DNA of 64,000 nucleotides from the NCBI GenBank assembly GCA_964106645.2, contig OZ067043.1, one strand, 5' to 3'. Made by a program: the position numbers and the translations under genes. This stretch comes from Podarcis pityusensis (lineage: Eukaryota). The first letter of the stretch is position 1. Each line of letters opens with the position of its first letter. This document shows positions 1-62,377 of this stretch, one piece after another. The notes beneath the pieces were generated by a model. The model did no database searches, was not told where the DNA came from, and saw nothing but the letters and a program-made list of their open reading frames with translations.

Positions 1-1519
1 GCATCTCTTTATTAGCTGTGGCCGGCAAAATTCTTACAAGGATCTTAGCAAACCATCTCCTAATAATATCTGAGGCTACCCTTCCTGAATCCCAAAATGG
101 TTTTCAACCTTCTAGAGGGACAGTGGACATTATTTTAACCGCTCGACAGCTTCAAGAAAAATGCAGAGAGCAAAACCAACCCCTGTATATGGTGTTTATT
201 GACCTGACTAAGGCCTTTGAAACTGTAAATCATAATGCCCTGTGGACTGTCCTTCTGAAAATCGGCTGCCCAGATAAATTTGTGAACATCCTTCGGCTCC
301 TCCATGATAAAATGACAGCAAGAATCACCGATAACAATGGCTCTCAAAGTGAACCATTCACAGTGGGATCAGGTGTTAAACAGGGTTGTGTTATGACCCC
401 AACTTTATTTATTATTTTCATCACCATGATCCTACACTTTGTCGAAGGGAAACTCCCCACCTAAGTAGAAATCATATATCATACAGATGGAAAGCTCTTT
501 AATCTGAGTAGGCTGAAAGCAAAGGTTACCATAACTTCCATCATAGAACTTGTATGCTGCTGACAACATAGTGTGTGCACACTCAGAGAACGACCTCCAA
601 ACCATCCTAAATATCTTTGCAGAAGCTTACGAAAAGCTTGGCCTATCGCTCGACATCCAAAAAACCAAAGTGCTGCACCAGCAAGCACAAAACAACCCTT
701 CTGTAGCACCACAAATCCAACTCAGCGGTGTAATGTTGGAAAGTATTGATCACTTCTACCTGGTCTTTCCACAAGGGCTGACATTGATGCCGAAATCAAG
801 CATCACCTGAGCTCTGCGAGGGCAGCTTTATCCTGATTGAAGTGCAGAGAGTTTGAGGACCGGGGAAACCAAAATGCTTGTTTGCAAAGCTATTATATTA
901 CAAATCTTACTGTATGCTTGTGAAATGTGGACCACTTATAAACTCCATCTCCAACTCCTCGAAAGATTCCATCAAAGGTATCTCCAAAAATTTTTACCTA
1001 TCACTTGGGAAGACAGGCGAACTAGTGCCAGTGTACTAGAAGAAGGAAAGATAACCAGTGTCGAAGCAATAATTCTTCAACATAGACTTCGATGGACTGG
1101 TCATGTTGTTTGGATGTCTGATTATCGTCTTTCAAAGCAACTACTCCATTCCGAACTTAAAAATGGAAAGTGTAATGCTGGTGGTCAACAAAAGAGGTTT
1201 AAAAGGCTCTCTCAAGACAAATCTAAAAACATGTAGTATAAACACTGACAACTGGGAAACACTGGCCTGCGCGTGCTCCAGTTGGAGAACAGCCTTTATC
1301 AAAGGTGTCATGGACTTTGAAGACACTTGAACTCAGGACAAAAGGGAGAAACGTGCTAAGAGGAAGGCACATTTGGCAAACCCTCATCCAGAAACCTATG
1401 TACCCGCTGTGGAAGGACGTGTGGATCCAGAATTGGCCTCCGCAGTCACTTATGGACTCACTGTTAAGACCGTGTTCATGGAAGACAATCTTACTCAGCT
1501 ATGAGTGATCGCCAAAGAA
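1..1519 (+). mobile_element. RTE-clade LINE, 3' part (RT domain to 3' end), decayed; runs off the left edge of the window
   Basis: ORF pieces 18-464 (PESQNGF..RGTVD..ARQLQEKCREQNQPLYMVFIDLTKAF..GVKQGC), 550-810 (YAAD for YADD) and 853-1236 (LLYACEMW..RLRWTGHV). C-terminal C2H2-like CTRCGRTCGSRIGLRSHLWTH at ~1400-1460. Ends GCCAAAGAA. Multiple stops and frameshifts. Confidence 0.93.
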
Positions 1520-47814: not shown

Positions 47815-48430
47815 GTTTAAAATCTTAGGAGGAATCTGTATAGAATTTGAAAAACACCTTTATGGCTATCTCCCATTGAAACAATTACAATAGAGAGAGT
47901 TAATATGGACGGACAATGGTCGACTTACAGGGAACTGCTGAATTTTACAGGTGGGGTGGGGAGCCAAAACTGAAACCAATGGAAAACTTAAGGAGCCAGG
48001 TTGGTTGCAATATCACCAGTTCCACGACATGTTTAAATTGGATAGAAAGAATGGATTTCTGGACCAAAGCTCACAATTTGAAAAAAGAACTCTTACAAAA
48101 TAAGGATAAAGTTTTGTTTAAAATGTATAATTTTTTACTAGAATGGGAAACAAAAGACAAGCTTGTTAAAACTTCATTGACACACTGAGCAATAGATATA
48201 GGAAACAATATAGACCTCAACCTCAACAGAGTAAATAATTCTTGATGGCTGTAAAAGTGGAAAACTGATTTGAATGGTTATAGTAACATATGCAGGGATG
48301 TATGATATGCAAAATGAACCATGGAAAGAGAAGAAGGGAAGTCATTGGATATTTTAAAGTTTGTAAAATGTTTATTTGGAAATGTAAAATTGAAAATTTA
48401 ATAAAAAATATTAAGAGAGGATTAAAAAAA
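47815..48430 (+). mobile_element. L1 LINE fragment (late ORF2 plus 3' UTR, internally deleted)
   Basis: WLQYHQ and KMYNFLLEWETKD.LVK..W(stop)AIDIG lizard-type L1 ORF2 motifs; AATAAA and A-rich tail at ~48400-48430. Confidence 0.75.
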
Positions 48431-58355: not shown

Positions 58356-60091
58356 TACTTGCACCATTTTATGGAGTTCTACTCACATCTAATCCAGGCT
58401 AGAACAACTTGTGTTTAGGGATGGGTTATATTCTTTATTCTATGATGCTTCCACGTATGCTCAGTAACAGGTCCAGGAAAAACCATAAACCCCCATGTTC
58501 ATAGCTTTATGGCATTTCAAAGAACTCATTTCAGGAAAGAAGATGGGCACAATCTTCTCTCTCAGTCATGCCAGTTAGCTAGACTCTAATACTGAGAGGA
58601 AACTCAGCATAATGACTAATGCAGGTTACGCTGAGCAACTTCCAATCCTAATCACAGCTAACAGGTAAAGTTTATGACTCAAAGGCCAGGTAGATGTTTC
58701 CATTCTCATCCAGGCTAAAACACTGTCTCTATTTTCAAAACCAGATAGTGAATTTGGCTGTATGAAGAACATCTAGGCATTTCAAACACTGTCTTGAGTC
58801 GGACCTTCTGAGATGCTATTTGAAAGTGCCAGAAGCACACAGAACAGCAACAGTTCCCTCAGGGCCAATTTATATTTGACTTGGGGTAAGTCCTGATGGC
58901 TGAGTCCTAGGCACATGTTGATTTTTCAGTGTGCAACCAAGTCCTCATCTGACTGCTTTACCCTCAGCTACATTCCCACTTGAGCCCATATTGAGCTGTG
59001 TACATTTGGACAGTGCACATCATATCCTTGTAGGATTGCCAGATCCCAGCCCACAGACTCTCTCGCTACAAGGCAGCCAAAAAAACTTAACGTAGCTGTA
59101 TCTTCCACCCCAGTGTCACACATTCTTCTCCCCACCAATGATCTTTTTACAATTTTGCATTTCCTGGCCTAGAAATATGCACCTCAGCAGCTTGTAATGT
59201 GCACTTCAAATAAGAGACTATTATCACTCTGATATGACATTTCAATCTGAGATGGAGAAATCCTCCTCCCTCCTGACATCTGTCAGTAGCATTTGGGAAA
59301 TTGTATTTGCCATTGTTCATGATACCTTGCTTGCCTTTCCCTCCCATTGTCACCAGAAGAAGTCAAGTAAGCAGAGTGTGCATATGTGTGTGTGTGTGGA
59401 GGAGATGGCAGGAATGATTTAACAGCCCATGTTGTGCTCCCCAAAACAAGTGAGTCTGACTGGGCTTTGAATAAATCACATGGTGAAGACAAGAGTGGAC
59501 AGGTAAGAGCATAAAAAGAGCCCTGCTAGATCTGACCAGGTGGCTGCCTAGTCTAGTTTCCTGTTTCCTTCAGTGGCCAACCAGATGCTTATGGGAATCC
59601 CACAAGCAGGAGATCAAGGCAATAGTGTGTCCCATCACTGTTCCCCAGCATCTAGAAATTCAACAGCAGGCTGAATCGTATGTGATATTGTTTTTTTTAA
59701 AAAAATAATATTTATTAATTTTCAACCGTTTAAACACAACAAAATAGACAAAACAAAACAAAAAGCATAACAAAATAAGACACAAACCATTTTACACACA
59801 AAACAATTTCAATATCTTATCTTTCATTCCCTTATTTCCACGACCTCCTCACACCTTCCTTTTTATATTCCTCTTCTATTAATTGTTTCAGCAATTCCTT
59901 TCCATCTTCCTCTGTTTCTATCCTATAATTATCTTAACATATTCTGACCTTATTTTTCCCTTTAATACTCTATTAATCCATTTATACTTAATTCCTTATA
60001 ACATTTCTACTAAAGCCATATAACTTCATTCCAACATTTTTCTTACATTCATTATTTTTACAGTATTTCTATAAATAGTCCTAAACTTTTT

Positions 60092-60769
60092 TCAGTCTTC
60101 TTCCACTGACTCTTCTCCCTGGTCTCCCGTCGTTTCCGCCAATTCCATATAGTCCATCAACTTCACCTGCCATTCTTCCCGAATAGATAAATCTTGTGTC
60201 TTCCAGTACTTCACAATGATTATTCTTGCTGCTGTTGTTGCATATGTGAAAAAAATTCTATCCTTCTTTAACACCAATTGGCCGACCATGCCCAGGAGAA
60301 AGGCCTCTGGCTTCTTCAAAAGGGTATATTTAAATGCCTTTTTCATTTCGTTATAAATCATCTCCCAAAGTATCTTAATCCTTGGGCATGTCCACCAAAA
60401 GTGAACTCTAATCCTCAAATTCGTCTGTTTTTCTTTAAGTTCAGTCATAGCGAGCGTCAACTTATGTTCATCAAATTGCCTCTGTAGGGCTGGGGCTCTC
60501 TTTCTCTTTCTCTCCAGTTGTGTTACTTTACATTCAGCAGCAACCGCTTTTTCCCTGGCTTCCTCCACAGTTTGCCGTATCAAAGTAGGTTCCTGTGTCA
60601 CTTTCTGGGTGGTTTCTGTATTGGTATTATTTATACTCTCTGTATTTAGGTTGATTTTAGTAATTGAAACATCCATTTTCGCATTTATCGTGTCCATTTT
60701 CCTGTTAAGCCGCTCCAATGAGTCATTTATCTTATAAAATGCAGCCACTAAAGCCTCTTCTGTCGACAT
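60092..60769 (-). CDS. L1 ORF1 coiled-coil / ORF2 C-terminus chimeric ORF (225 aa from ATG at 60769; frame is open from 60847)
   Basis: Heptad-like N-terminal half ending in the ORF1 motif NLRIR, fused at ~60404 to HFWWTC..KPEAFLLG..TAARIIIVKYWK..EEWQVKLMDYMELA of ORF2; no internal stop. Expression unknown. Confidence 0.6.
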   Translation of the reverse strand: MSTEEALVAAFYKINDSLERLNRKMDTINAKMDVSITKINLNTESINNTNTETTQKVTQEPTLIRQTVEEAREKAVAAECKVTQLERKRKRAPALQRQFDEHKLTLAMTELKEKQTNLRIRVHFWWTCPRIKILWEMIYNEMKKAFKYTLLKKPEAFLLGMVGQLVLKKDRIFFTYATTAARIIIVKYWKTQDLSIREEWQVKLMDYMELAETTGDQGEESVEED

Positions 60770-61439
60770 TCTTCTTGGTTTTAAATGTGCTGGTACAAAG
60801 GCCACAGCAGAAGGAGCAGGGGGGCACCTCTTCTGGATTGTTGCCAAGTCCTCCCAGACCTTAATGTTTTGTCCGCAGTTGACTAGTCTGTTTTTCCTCT
60901 TCCATTTACCATAACACTTAAAAGATTCAAGGTCAGTCCCAGAGCCTCACGGTTTTTAACTTGCAGCTGGAAATTCCCCTAGCCCAACTCTTGTAAAACA
61001 ACCGGTTTCAAAGGCTTCCACTAGGGGGAAACAGTTTCTATTTGTAATAGTCAATAGTATCCTCTTTTCAACAATCCAAAATTAGTTTCAAATTAGTTTC
61101 AATTTTCAGTTACTTTTACTCCTTTTTAAAGCAGCAGGAGACAGTAGAAACAATGTATTTCTCTTGTTTAACTAGCTGTCAATGAACGTTCTAAATGCTG
61201 TCAATGAACATTCCAAAATACGTCAGTCCTGCTAGCAGCCCGTTTCCAGGGTCAGAGCGGCGGTGTTTTAAATCTCTTCACTCTCTCCCACAGGCATACT
61301 CAATCCGCAACTTCCCCCTCTCTTCTCCTGCCTCCAAGAGGGGGTTTATTGTTCTTTATTGATGGAAGTTTAATCTTTTACAAAAGACTTTCCAGGACTC
61401 CAGCTTGCAACTTCATTGCCTCAGTCTATTTACGAAAGG

Positions 61440-61856
61440 GGAAGGCGGACTTCCTGTTTTGAACCTCCCCGTTGCGATACCAAATTAAACCTTTAGAAAT
61501 CCAATTCTTCCGTTTCAGATCTACTCACGGGTAATTACTTTAAAGTCAAATTGTCCACAGGAAAAGGTCAGCGCTCTCCGGCAACAGCTATGCAGCTTCG
61601 CTCCGTGGAAGAAGCAGATGATTCGATGCACCGCGCCACTCACCCCACGTCGCTCCGGAGCCCCAAAAACCGGGGTTCCCCACGAGTGGGGGAGGAGCAA
61701 AAGGTGCCCGCTGAATCCCACGTTCACAGGCTTCTCCCGCCTGTGATTTTAACGGGTCTCTGCCTTCGCCGTGGCAGCCAGACCCAGATTCTCACGGAGC
61801 AGATTCCTCCCGGTCAGAGGAATTCCGCCATTACCGGAGGCGCCTCCCTGGAAGTC
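61440..61856 (-). promoter_or_regulatory. Putative L1 internal Pol II promoter (CpG-rich 5' UTR, YY1-like site)
   Basis: Dense CpG; ATGGCGG core at 61825-61831 on minus, about 25-30 nt from the 5' end. Confidence 0.55.
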
Positions 61857-62070
61857 CTGAATCGTATGTGATATTGGAGGTATCACATAGAGCTATCATG
61901 ACTAGTATCCATTGATATTGTTATCCTCCATTAACTTGTATAATCCCCTTTTAAAGGCATCTTAGTTGCTGGCCAACCTAGACAGATTAACACTTTAGTA
62001 GCTCTGGGATAATAGGACAGGTACTCTTCTGTTAAAGAACACAAAGTATTAAATGGACAGCTCTCACAAT

Positions 62071-62377
62071 CAGGGACGGATTTAAGTTTGATGAGGCCTT
62101 AAGCTACTGAAGGTAATGGGGCCCTTTATATGTCCAGCTGTCCTTTGTCAACAACAAATTGTCGCTGTTTTTTGTGTTGAATATATGCTATATGGTAATT
62201 TATGGACCTAAAGCCATTTGCCACTGTTGTTGTAGGTAAGTTTTATTTTATTTGTTTTTTATCTTATATTTTGGAAATGTACATCCAGTTTTTTTTCTCT
62301 TTAATTTTTTTTTGGGCCCCCAAAAGAGTGGGCCCCTAAGCTATAGCTTGTTTAGATTATATGTAAATTTGGCACTG
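62071..62377. mobile_element. hAT MITE with perfect 8-bp TSD
   Basis: TSD CTCACAAT at 62063-62070 and 62378-62385; TIR CAGGGACGGATTTA / TAAATTTGGCACTG. Confidence 0.88.

Follow-up and report, generated by a model that had tools for sequence, protein, structure and literature searches.

What kind of insertion gives rise to a 2166-bp element that has the two ends of an L1 retrotransposon and a single reading frame joining parts of ORF1 and ORF2? The question is raised by a stretch of Podarcis pityusensis DNA of 64,000 nucleotides (contig OZ067043.1 of assembly GCA_964106645.2; hereafter the window), near the right end of which such an element, here called the mini-L1, is bounded by target-site duplications (TSDs). 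A first-pass annotation of the window had described it as an intact mini-L1 with an ORF1/ORF2 fusion and had proposed a family of non-autonomous L1 parasites. We found that the mini-L1 is a chimera which was inserted recently and as a unit, and that lesions in its reading frame are older than the insertion. We think it somewhat more probable than not that the RNA of an already shortened, non-autonomous L1 was inserted by target-primed reverse transcription (TPRT), that it belongs to a lineage of deletion derivatives and that its open reading frame (ORF) is a by-product.

A recent insertion that arrived as a unit

The insert lies on the minus strand and measures 2166 bp between two copies of the 20-bp TSD ctgaatcgtatgtgatattg, which are identical at 20/20 positions. 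Its 5' leader comprises 944 nt, the initial 400 nt of which are CpG-rich (GC content 0.61/0.48, CpG observed/expected 0.69/1.17). The 3' region of about 390 nt is AT-rich and contains an AATAAA signal, followed 12 bases further on by a tail of eight A that adjoins the TSD. In a third organism, one contig (X15, record 15) has the identical first base of the leader attached to another upstream flank, and position 61856 is therefore the normal 5' end of the family. The perfect TSD, the length, the CpG-rich 5' end, the 3' untranslated region (UTR), the AATAAA and the poly(A) tail of the first-pass annotation were all found in the sequence.

The mini-L1 shows what is expected of a TPRT product, namely a TSD with a matching empty site, poly(A) after a polyadenylation signal, and homology to L1 ORF1 and ORF2. 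The endonuclease (EN) and reverse transcriptase (RT) domains and the complete ORF1 of an autonomous L1 are absent from it. The inferred nick is at 61876/61877 (plus strand ...ATATTG/GAGG); it is T-rich upstream and differs from TTTT/AA, a consensus that may not hold for the EN of lizard L1s.

Two DNA runs, X1 and X3, each from a different related lizard, supplied the Logan contigs that were aligned to positions 59400-62150. The contig statements made here refer to the 32 listed of about 12,000 contig pieces, and the summed depths are sums over contigs, not copy numbers. In both organisms there are contigs in which 59670 is followed immediately by 61857 and the TSD occurs as a single 20-letter copy. 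The empty-site contig of X1 extends 81 nt to the left and 250 nt to the right of this joint, at a depth of 19.6 compared with 22.7 for single-copy flank. Against the window, the flanks of the empty site show 0-1 changed letters in X1 and a divergence of about 1% in X3 (overall 0-1.2%). As the empty site is found in near-identical flanks, the insertion must be recent, and the element arrived as a 2166-bp unit. The insertion is young and absent from very close relatives or other individuals. An L1 derivative that lacks EN and RT and was inserted whole, as had been proposed, is thus borne out by the empty site in two related lizards. The first-pass annotation had also considered that orthologous loci might carry the full-length L1; the orthologous sites in X1 and X3 are empty instead.

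The surroundings of the insertion are themselves repetitive. In X1 the flanking segments 59492-59675 and 62068-62150 have summed depths of 3.9k-6.8k and 586k, respectively, compared with 23 for unique flank, and joints such as 59597 to 61921 were seen around the insertion flanks. These joints and the repetition of the flanks suggest that the mini-L1 landed within or beside an older repeat. Within the leader, a 13-nt direct repeat, gttcattgacagc, occurs twice at 61175-61209 (minus strand) with a spacing of 22 nt, and a second short tandem (gaaactaattt) follows about 90 nt downstream. Both may represent duplicated promoter or transcription-factor sites.

The fused reading frame and its damage

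The ORF at 60092-60847 (minus strand) has 251 aa when read from a TTG codon and 225 aa when read from the ATG at 60767-60769. At the junction the sequence ...EKQTNLRIR, ending at 60407, is followed by a single Val codon and then by HFWWTCP..., which starts at 60403. Residues 10-147 of the 251-aa version were aligned by BLASTP at 71% identity to P0001 (Podarcis raffonei LOC128406054, XP_053229072.1) and residues 148-251 at 76% identity to P0002, an ORF2 C-terminal fragment of Podarcis lilfordi. An exhaustive HMMER search of 1.84 billion protein representatives gave 166 matches. Each of the 150 matches listed spans either residues 10-148 or residues 146-251 of the query and none spans both; the alignments of P0009, P0083, P0096, and P0036 all stop at the junction.

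The partners on the two sides identify the two halves. Among the N-terminal partners are the full-length lizard ORF1 proteins P0083 (362 aa) and P0096 (344 aa), which beyond the common NLRIR have about 190 further residues forming a typical ORF1p RRM and CTD. A lizard ORF1p profile matches human L1 ORF1p (2yko, E 0.007) across the end of the coil, the RRM, and the CTD. The C-terminal partners P0014 and P0050 bear an RT (RVT_1), and the profile of such RT-bearing partners matches human ORF2p with an E value of about 1e-90; with a profile of the tail only, the C-terminal half of the fusion corresponds to about residues 1142-1245 of human ORF2p (E 5.6e-17). Folded alone, the ORF2 tail gives a helical model (pLDDT 84.5) whose top structural matches are human ORF2p chains (Foldseek probability 0.98, TMq 0.65). 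No similarity to RT, EN, RRM, or CTD was found inside the element by tblastn, the RT-bearing relatives matching only the last approximately 100 codons, and Pfam detected no RT or EN in the fusion protein, only sub-threshold coiled-coil-like noise. By these comparisons the ORF is a clean chimera of an ORF1 coiled coil and an ORF2 tail with a sharp border at residues 147/148 of the 251-aa version. The proposed 225-aa fusion is confirmed by BLASTP, HMMER and the profiles, and the domains reported as missing are indeed missing.

The tail starts at the His of a CX3CX7HX4C knuckle and keeps this His and the last Cys, that is two of the four zinc ligands, which agrees with the earlier description of a second half of the ORF2 Cys/His knuckle behind the junction. 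The equivalent of W1208 is retained. The upstream half of the C-terminal segment is lacking, including the equivalents of K1107, H1113, I1121/I1122, and W1131, which in the cryo-EM structure of human ORF2p touch the poly(A) tract and an RNA stem (PMC10830416).

The frame is damaged at both ends. Residues 1-30 of P0001 align by tblastn to 60912-60823 (77% identity) in a frame that differs from that of residues 35-176. The ancestral ORF1 ATG at 60910-60912 meets an in-frame stop at codon 10 (60883-60885), and the frame change coincides with a site near 60825 where the X17 contig, from another species, is longer by 10 letters. At position 60092 of the terminal stop a sense-codon letter is present in 56341 of 56417 depth units in X1 and in 6868 of 6868 in X3. 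The ORF2 proteins of relatives run about 17 residues past the stop of the fusion, where the mini-L1 is out of frame with them. Given the lesions at the start and the near-private stop, the 225-aa ORF is what remains open in the middle of an ancestral fusion frame that was longer. The label 'intact' consequently holds for the ends of the element and fails for its coding frame, which has a stop in the start region, a frameshifting gap of 10 nt and a near-private terminal stop. Eight displayed sites of the ORF differ from the majority of the related contigs; five of these differences are nonsynonymous, one is the stop and two are synonymous. They appear to resemble neutral drift and give no sign of constraint.

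The positions of the features and the evidence for each are collected in Table 1.

Table 1. Positions of the mini-L1 and its parts in the window
Feature	Position	Strand	Evidence
TSD on the 5' side of the element, 20 bp	61857-61876	-	identical to 59671-59690; single copy in the empty-site contigs of X1 and X3
TSD on the 3' side of the element, 20 bp	59671-59690	-	identical copy; empty-site contigs
Whole mini-L1 insertion, 2166 bp	59691-61856	-	TSD, leader composition, tail, empty site
5' leader/UTR, first ~400 nt CpG-rich, canonical 5' end at 61856	60913-61856	-	CpG observed/expected 0.69-1.17; X15 contig
Disabled ~50 first codons of the ancestral ORF1	60770-60912	-	tblastn frame switch, translation, 10 extra letters of the X17 contig
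ORF1-derived part of the open frame, residues 1-121: N-terminal region and coiled coil, through NLRIR (first RRM strand)	60407-60769	-	71% identity to P0001
Junction codon (Val), ORF1/ORF2 border	60404-60406	-	limits of BLASTP, HMMER and tblastn alignments
ORF2-tail-derived part of the open frame, residues 123-225, ~ human ORF2p 1142-1245	60095-60403	-	76% identity to P0002; profile; fold
Stop codon closing the 225-aa ORF, near-private	60092-60094	-	sense codon in related contigs
Leftover of the last ~17 ORF2 codons (out of frame, further stop) and 3' UTR with AATAAA at 59711-59716	59699-60091	-	sequence, tblastn
Poly(A) tail, 8 A	59691-59698	-	sequence

A protein made from the open frame would still contain the coil. 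In a three-chain model of two copies of P0001 (residues 53-176) and one copy of fusion residues 1-122 an in-register coil was formed. The score was 0.67, compared with 0.00 for the best of three controls, a mark that 51 of 78 solved complexes attain, as do 2 of 108 mismatched pairs; such a pass by close relatives of a known trimer indicates likeness, not binding, and P0001 has not been established as a helper. The runs agree in at least 94% of the contacts, and the pLDDT of the partner is at least 77. The fusion protein, if made, is thus predicted to be able to enter trimers of the ORF1p type. The coil of the lizard ORF1 proteins (A2: P0083, P0096, P0009, P0036) matches the stalks of trimeric autotransporter adhesins (2wpq, E 6.5e-7) better than human ORF1p. 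This match stems from repeated motifs of the type N-T-x-S-I-N; they may correspond to the layers of polar Asn that are characteristic of trimers.

The source copy and the rival explanations

The gap near 60825 allowed the source of the insertion to be judged. The only contig or contigs of organism B at this site are also without the 10 letters, with a summed word depth of 150 compared with about 7 for single-copy flank, and organism B carries the empty site. As the gap is shared while the site is empty, the frameshift is older than the insertion and is carried by other copies. With the ORF1 start of the source already disabled, an autonomous parent acting in cis is unlikely. We infer that mobilisation in trans of a lineage that was already defective is likelier than a new deletion in an active parent.

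In two species each part of the element is highly repetitive at 90% identity or more. In X1 the summed depth amounts to 8.9k-28k for the ORF1 part, 115k-695k for the ORF2 tail and 3' UTR and 94k-207k for the first approximately 350 nt of the leader, with about 23 for the flank. The start of the leader (61516-61856) is 5-10 times commoner in related genomes than the ORF1 part, as if it were common to further element families, which may be the case. A contig joint in X1 connects 60628 to 61005 and thereby skips 376 nt (60629-61004) from the end of the leader to about codon 47 of ORF1; its depth is 366 compared with 23 for flank, and its shorter side measures 35 nt. A further deletion variant of this L1 lineage, multicopy in a related lizard, may underlie the joint. 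Elsewhere in the window old, diverged L1 pieces were found by tblastn, namely an ORF2 wrist/C-terminal piece at 47851-48212 (plus strand, 34-47% identity to P0002/P0014) and an RT piece at 3-413 (plus strand, 30% identity to P0050).

According to the reading we favour, a deletion derivative of a lacertid L1 would have kept the leader with its promoter, the first third of ORF1, the last approximately 100 codons of ORF2, the 3' UTR and the polyadenylation signal, and would have lost the RNA-binding domains of ORF1 as well as EN and RT. The deletion itself could go back to a template jump of the RT or to a DNA deletion in a source copy. The derivative would be transcribed by Pol II from its own leader. 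Since EN and RT are lost, copying must come in trans from complete L1s, the ORF2p of which, and probably the ORF1p too, would act on the poly(A) RNA; TPRT would then insert the derivative and leave the 20-bp TSD. The mini-L1 would be one member of a multicopy lineage with the same junction. A parasite family is probable, and the in-frame chimera most likely came about incidentally with the deletion, as a by-product, without being a gene under selection.

Several observations weigh against this reading. Within the 64 kb of the window the junction string is found a single time, and the rest of the element is not repeated in it either. No contig bridging 60403/60404 was seen among the 32 listed of about 12,000 pieces, and no protein with the same junction was found in two very large protein libraries. 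The ratio of five nonsynonymous changes and one stop to two synonymous changes is a tiny count (n = 8, displayed sites only). Lastly, the 225 codons still open and the predicted assembly of the coil with a related ORF1 N-terminus leave room for a role of the protein. Further searches for the junction gave similar results: the exact 225- and 251-aa proteins are absent from a collection of 15 billion proteins, and the 27-nt junction has no exact match in JGI metagenome contigs, an outcome that was expected and is uninformative. The runs X15 and X17, guessed to be RNA, contain short parts of the element only and no piece spanning the junction, which has no bearing on expression.

Joins of ORF1 to ORF2 are also present in other wall lizard proteins, at breakpoints unlike that of the mini-L1. 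In P0001 residues 1 to about 185 of ORF1 are joined to the post-RT part of ORF2, and in P0018 (Podarcis lilfordi CAI5795896.1) residues 1-58 of ORF1 are joined to the last approximately 66 residues of ORF2. As gene models both may be spliced predictions across L1 pieces. Deletion derivatives joining ORF1 to ORF2, or gene models spliced across L1 pieces, thus recur in wall lizards.

The single junction in the window, the absence of a same-junction protein from the libraries and of a bridging contig from the listed pieces would also be consistent with a one-off event, in which the ORF1-to-ORF2 deletion took place during a single retrotransposition, by a jump of the RT on its template, or in one source copy; there would be no family, and the in-frame fusion would be a 1-in-3 accident. 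The joins of P0001 and P0018 at other breakpoints, by which such deletions may arise repeatedly, point in the same direction. This explanation is possible and yet doubtful, because the lesions at the ORF1 start are older than the insertion and common to copies of another species, so that the source was not a working L1. A deletion after the insertion, by which a full-length L1 would have lost its middle, deserves almost no credence. A single filled allele is formally compatible with it, but an insert as young as this one, with a perfect TSD and an empty allele, would need two rare events in a short time, and the ORF1 lesions common to other copies again indicate a defective source. Splicing of the L1 transcript before retrotransposition, with the missing approximately 4 kb removed as an intron, would account for repeated identical junctions if the splice were recurrent, and human elements of this kind exist with all L1 hallmarks (PMC5860796). 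Relatives of the mini-L1 have Ala/Ser/Phe after NLRIR and Phe/Tyr before His-x-Trp-Trp, and at this protein level no placement of the breakpoint yields GT and AG. We regard splicing as very unlikely.

It has further to be considered that the fusion protein itself might be selected. The first-pass annotation had suggested that it could co-trimerise with helper ORF1p; a family could be maintained whose chimera trimerises or co-trimerises in this way and either recruits the L1 machinery to its own RNA or poisons the L1 particles of the helper. The 225-codon open frame, the score of the coil model relative to the best of its three controls and the confident fold of the ORF2-tail half (pLDDT 84.5) are in agreement with this idea. 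The evidence against it comes from several sides: the first approximately 50 ancestral codons are lost to a stop and a frameshift, the terminal stop is near-private, the changes are mostly nonsynonymous, two of the four zinc ligands are gone together with the equivalents of K1107, H1113, I1121/1122, and W1131 (PMC10830416), and passing the complex test is, for close relatives of a known trimer, a sign of likeness and not of binding. A selected fusion protein is therefore unlikely. A variant of this idea is an amplifying lacertid mini-L1 family with a conserved chimera of coil and distal ORF2p that co-assembles with helper ORF1p, as a hijack or as a dominant-negative brake, and of which the present copy is a decayed member; this we consider quite unlikely. 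Of the earlier proposal, then, the non-autonomous element and, probably, the parasite family stand, whereas a selected fusion protein is not supported; the assembly of the coil is predicted, and the damaged frame and the lost RNA contacts speak against a function in this copy. That the chimera is a by-product in the mini-L1 copy is argued by its damaged ends, by substitutions of a drift-like kind and by the missing RNA-contact half of the ORF2 segment.

Relation to known L1 derivatives

Template switching during reverse transcription gives internally deleted or rearranged L1 insertions, usually as one-offs. The mini-L1 resembles such products in that 5' and 3' parts of L1 are joined at an arbitrary internal point while the ends are normal; unlike in the usual one-offs, its source was already defective.

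HAL1 is presented in the literature summarised in PMC5753468 as an L1-derived non-autonomous element of mammals (Smit 1999; Bao and Jurka 2010, cited in PMC5753468). As far as that summary goes, the mini-L1 shares with HAL1 the L1 ends, one frame containing ORF1, the lack of EN and RT and the dependence on complete L1s; it differs in that HAL1 encodes ORF1p only, whereas the mini-L1 keeps the N-terminus and coil of ORF1 without RRM and CTD, fused to about 100 codons of ORF2. The complete ORF1p of a HAL1, with coiled coil, RRM, and CTD and without ORF2, is thus not present, as the homology ends at NLRIR and 103 ORF2 codons are fused. Spliced integrated retrotransposed L1 elements (SpIREs) are human deletions within the 5' UTR or from the 5' UTR to ORF1 with GT/AG borders; for variants with a damaged ORF1, which are mostly dead ends, ORF1p has to be supplied in trans (PMC5860796). 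Like SpIREs, the mini-L1 is internally shortened, has a TSD, poly(A), and a canonical 5' end and was inserted as a unit (PMC5860796). Unlike in SpIREs, its deletion spans from ORF1 to the tail of ORF2, and splice borders are unsupported at the protein level. The C-terminal half of the ORF can be compared with the C-terminal segment of human ORF2p (8sxt, 8uw3, 9k6g; PMC10830416, PMC10830420), to which it aligns at about 1142-1245 with the same predicted helical fold; in contrast to the human segment it comprises the distal half only, and the two Cys at the start of the knuckle, the insertion helix and the majority of the RNA-contact residues are absent. Judged by these analogies, the mini-L1 would work like a parasite of the HAL1 or SpIRE type and falls under the definition of neither, since its ORF1 is incomplete, ORF2 codons are fused to it and splice borders are not demonstrated.

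The value of this single copy is modest: it records a recent event that is best read as trans-mobilisation of a defective L1 RNA, and it corrects the label 'intact'. To our knowledge, protein-coding non-autonomous L1 derivatives have been documented mainly as the mammalian HAL1. If the reading we favour is true, 2.2-kb L1 derivatives would form a reptile lineage that is still jumping, as the empty site persists in close relatives; such a lineage would illustrate the ease with which protein-coding parasites arise from L1, and it would provide a natural test of cis-preference. Should the chimera prove to be conserved, it would be a natural decoy for the ORF1p coil.

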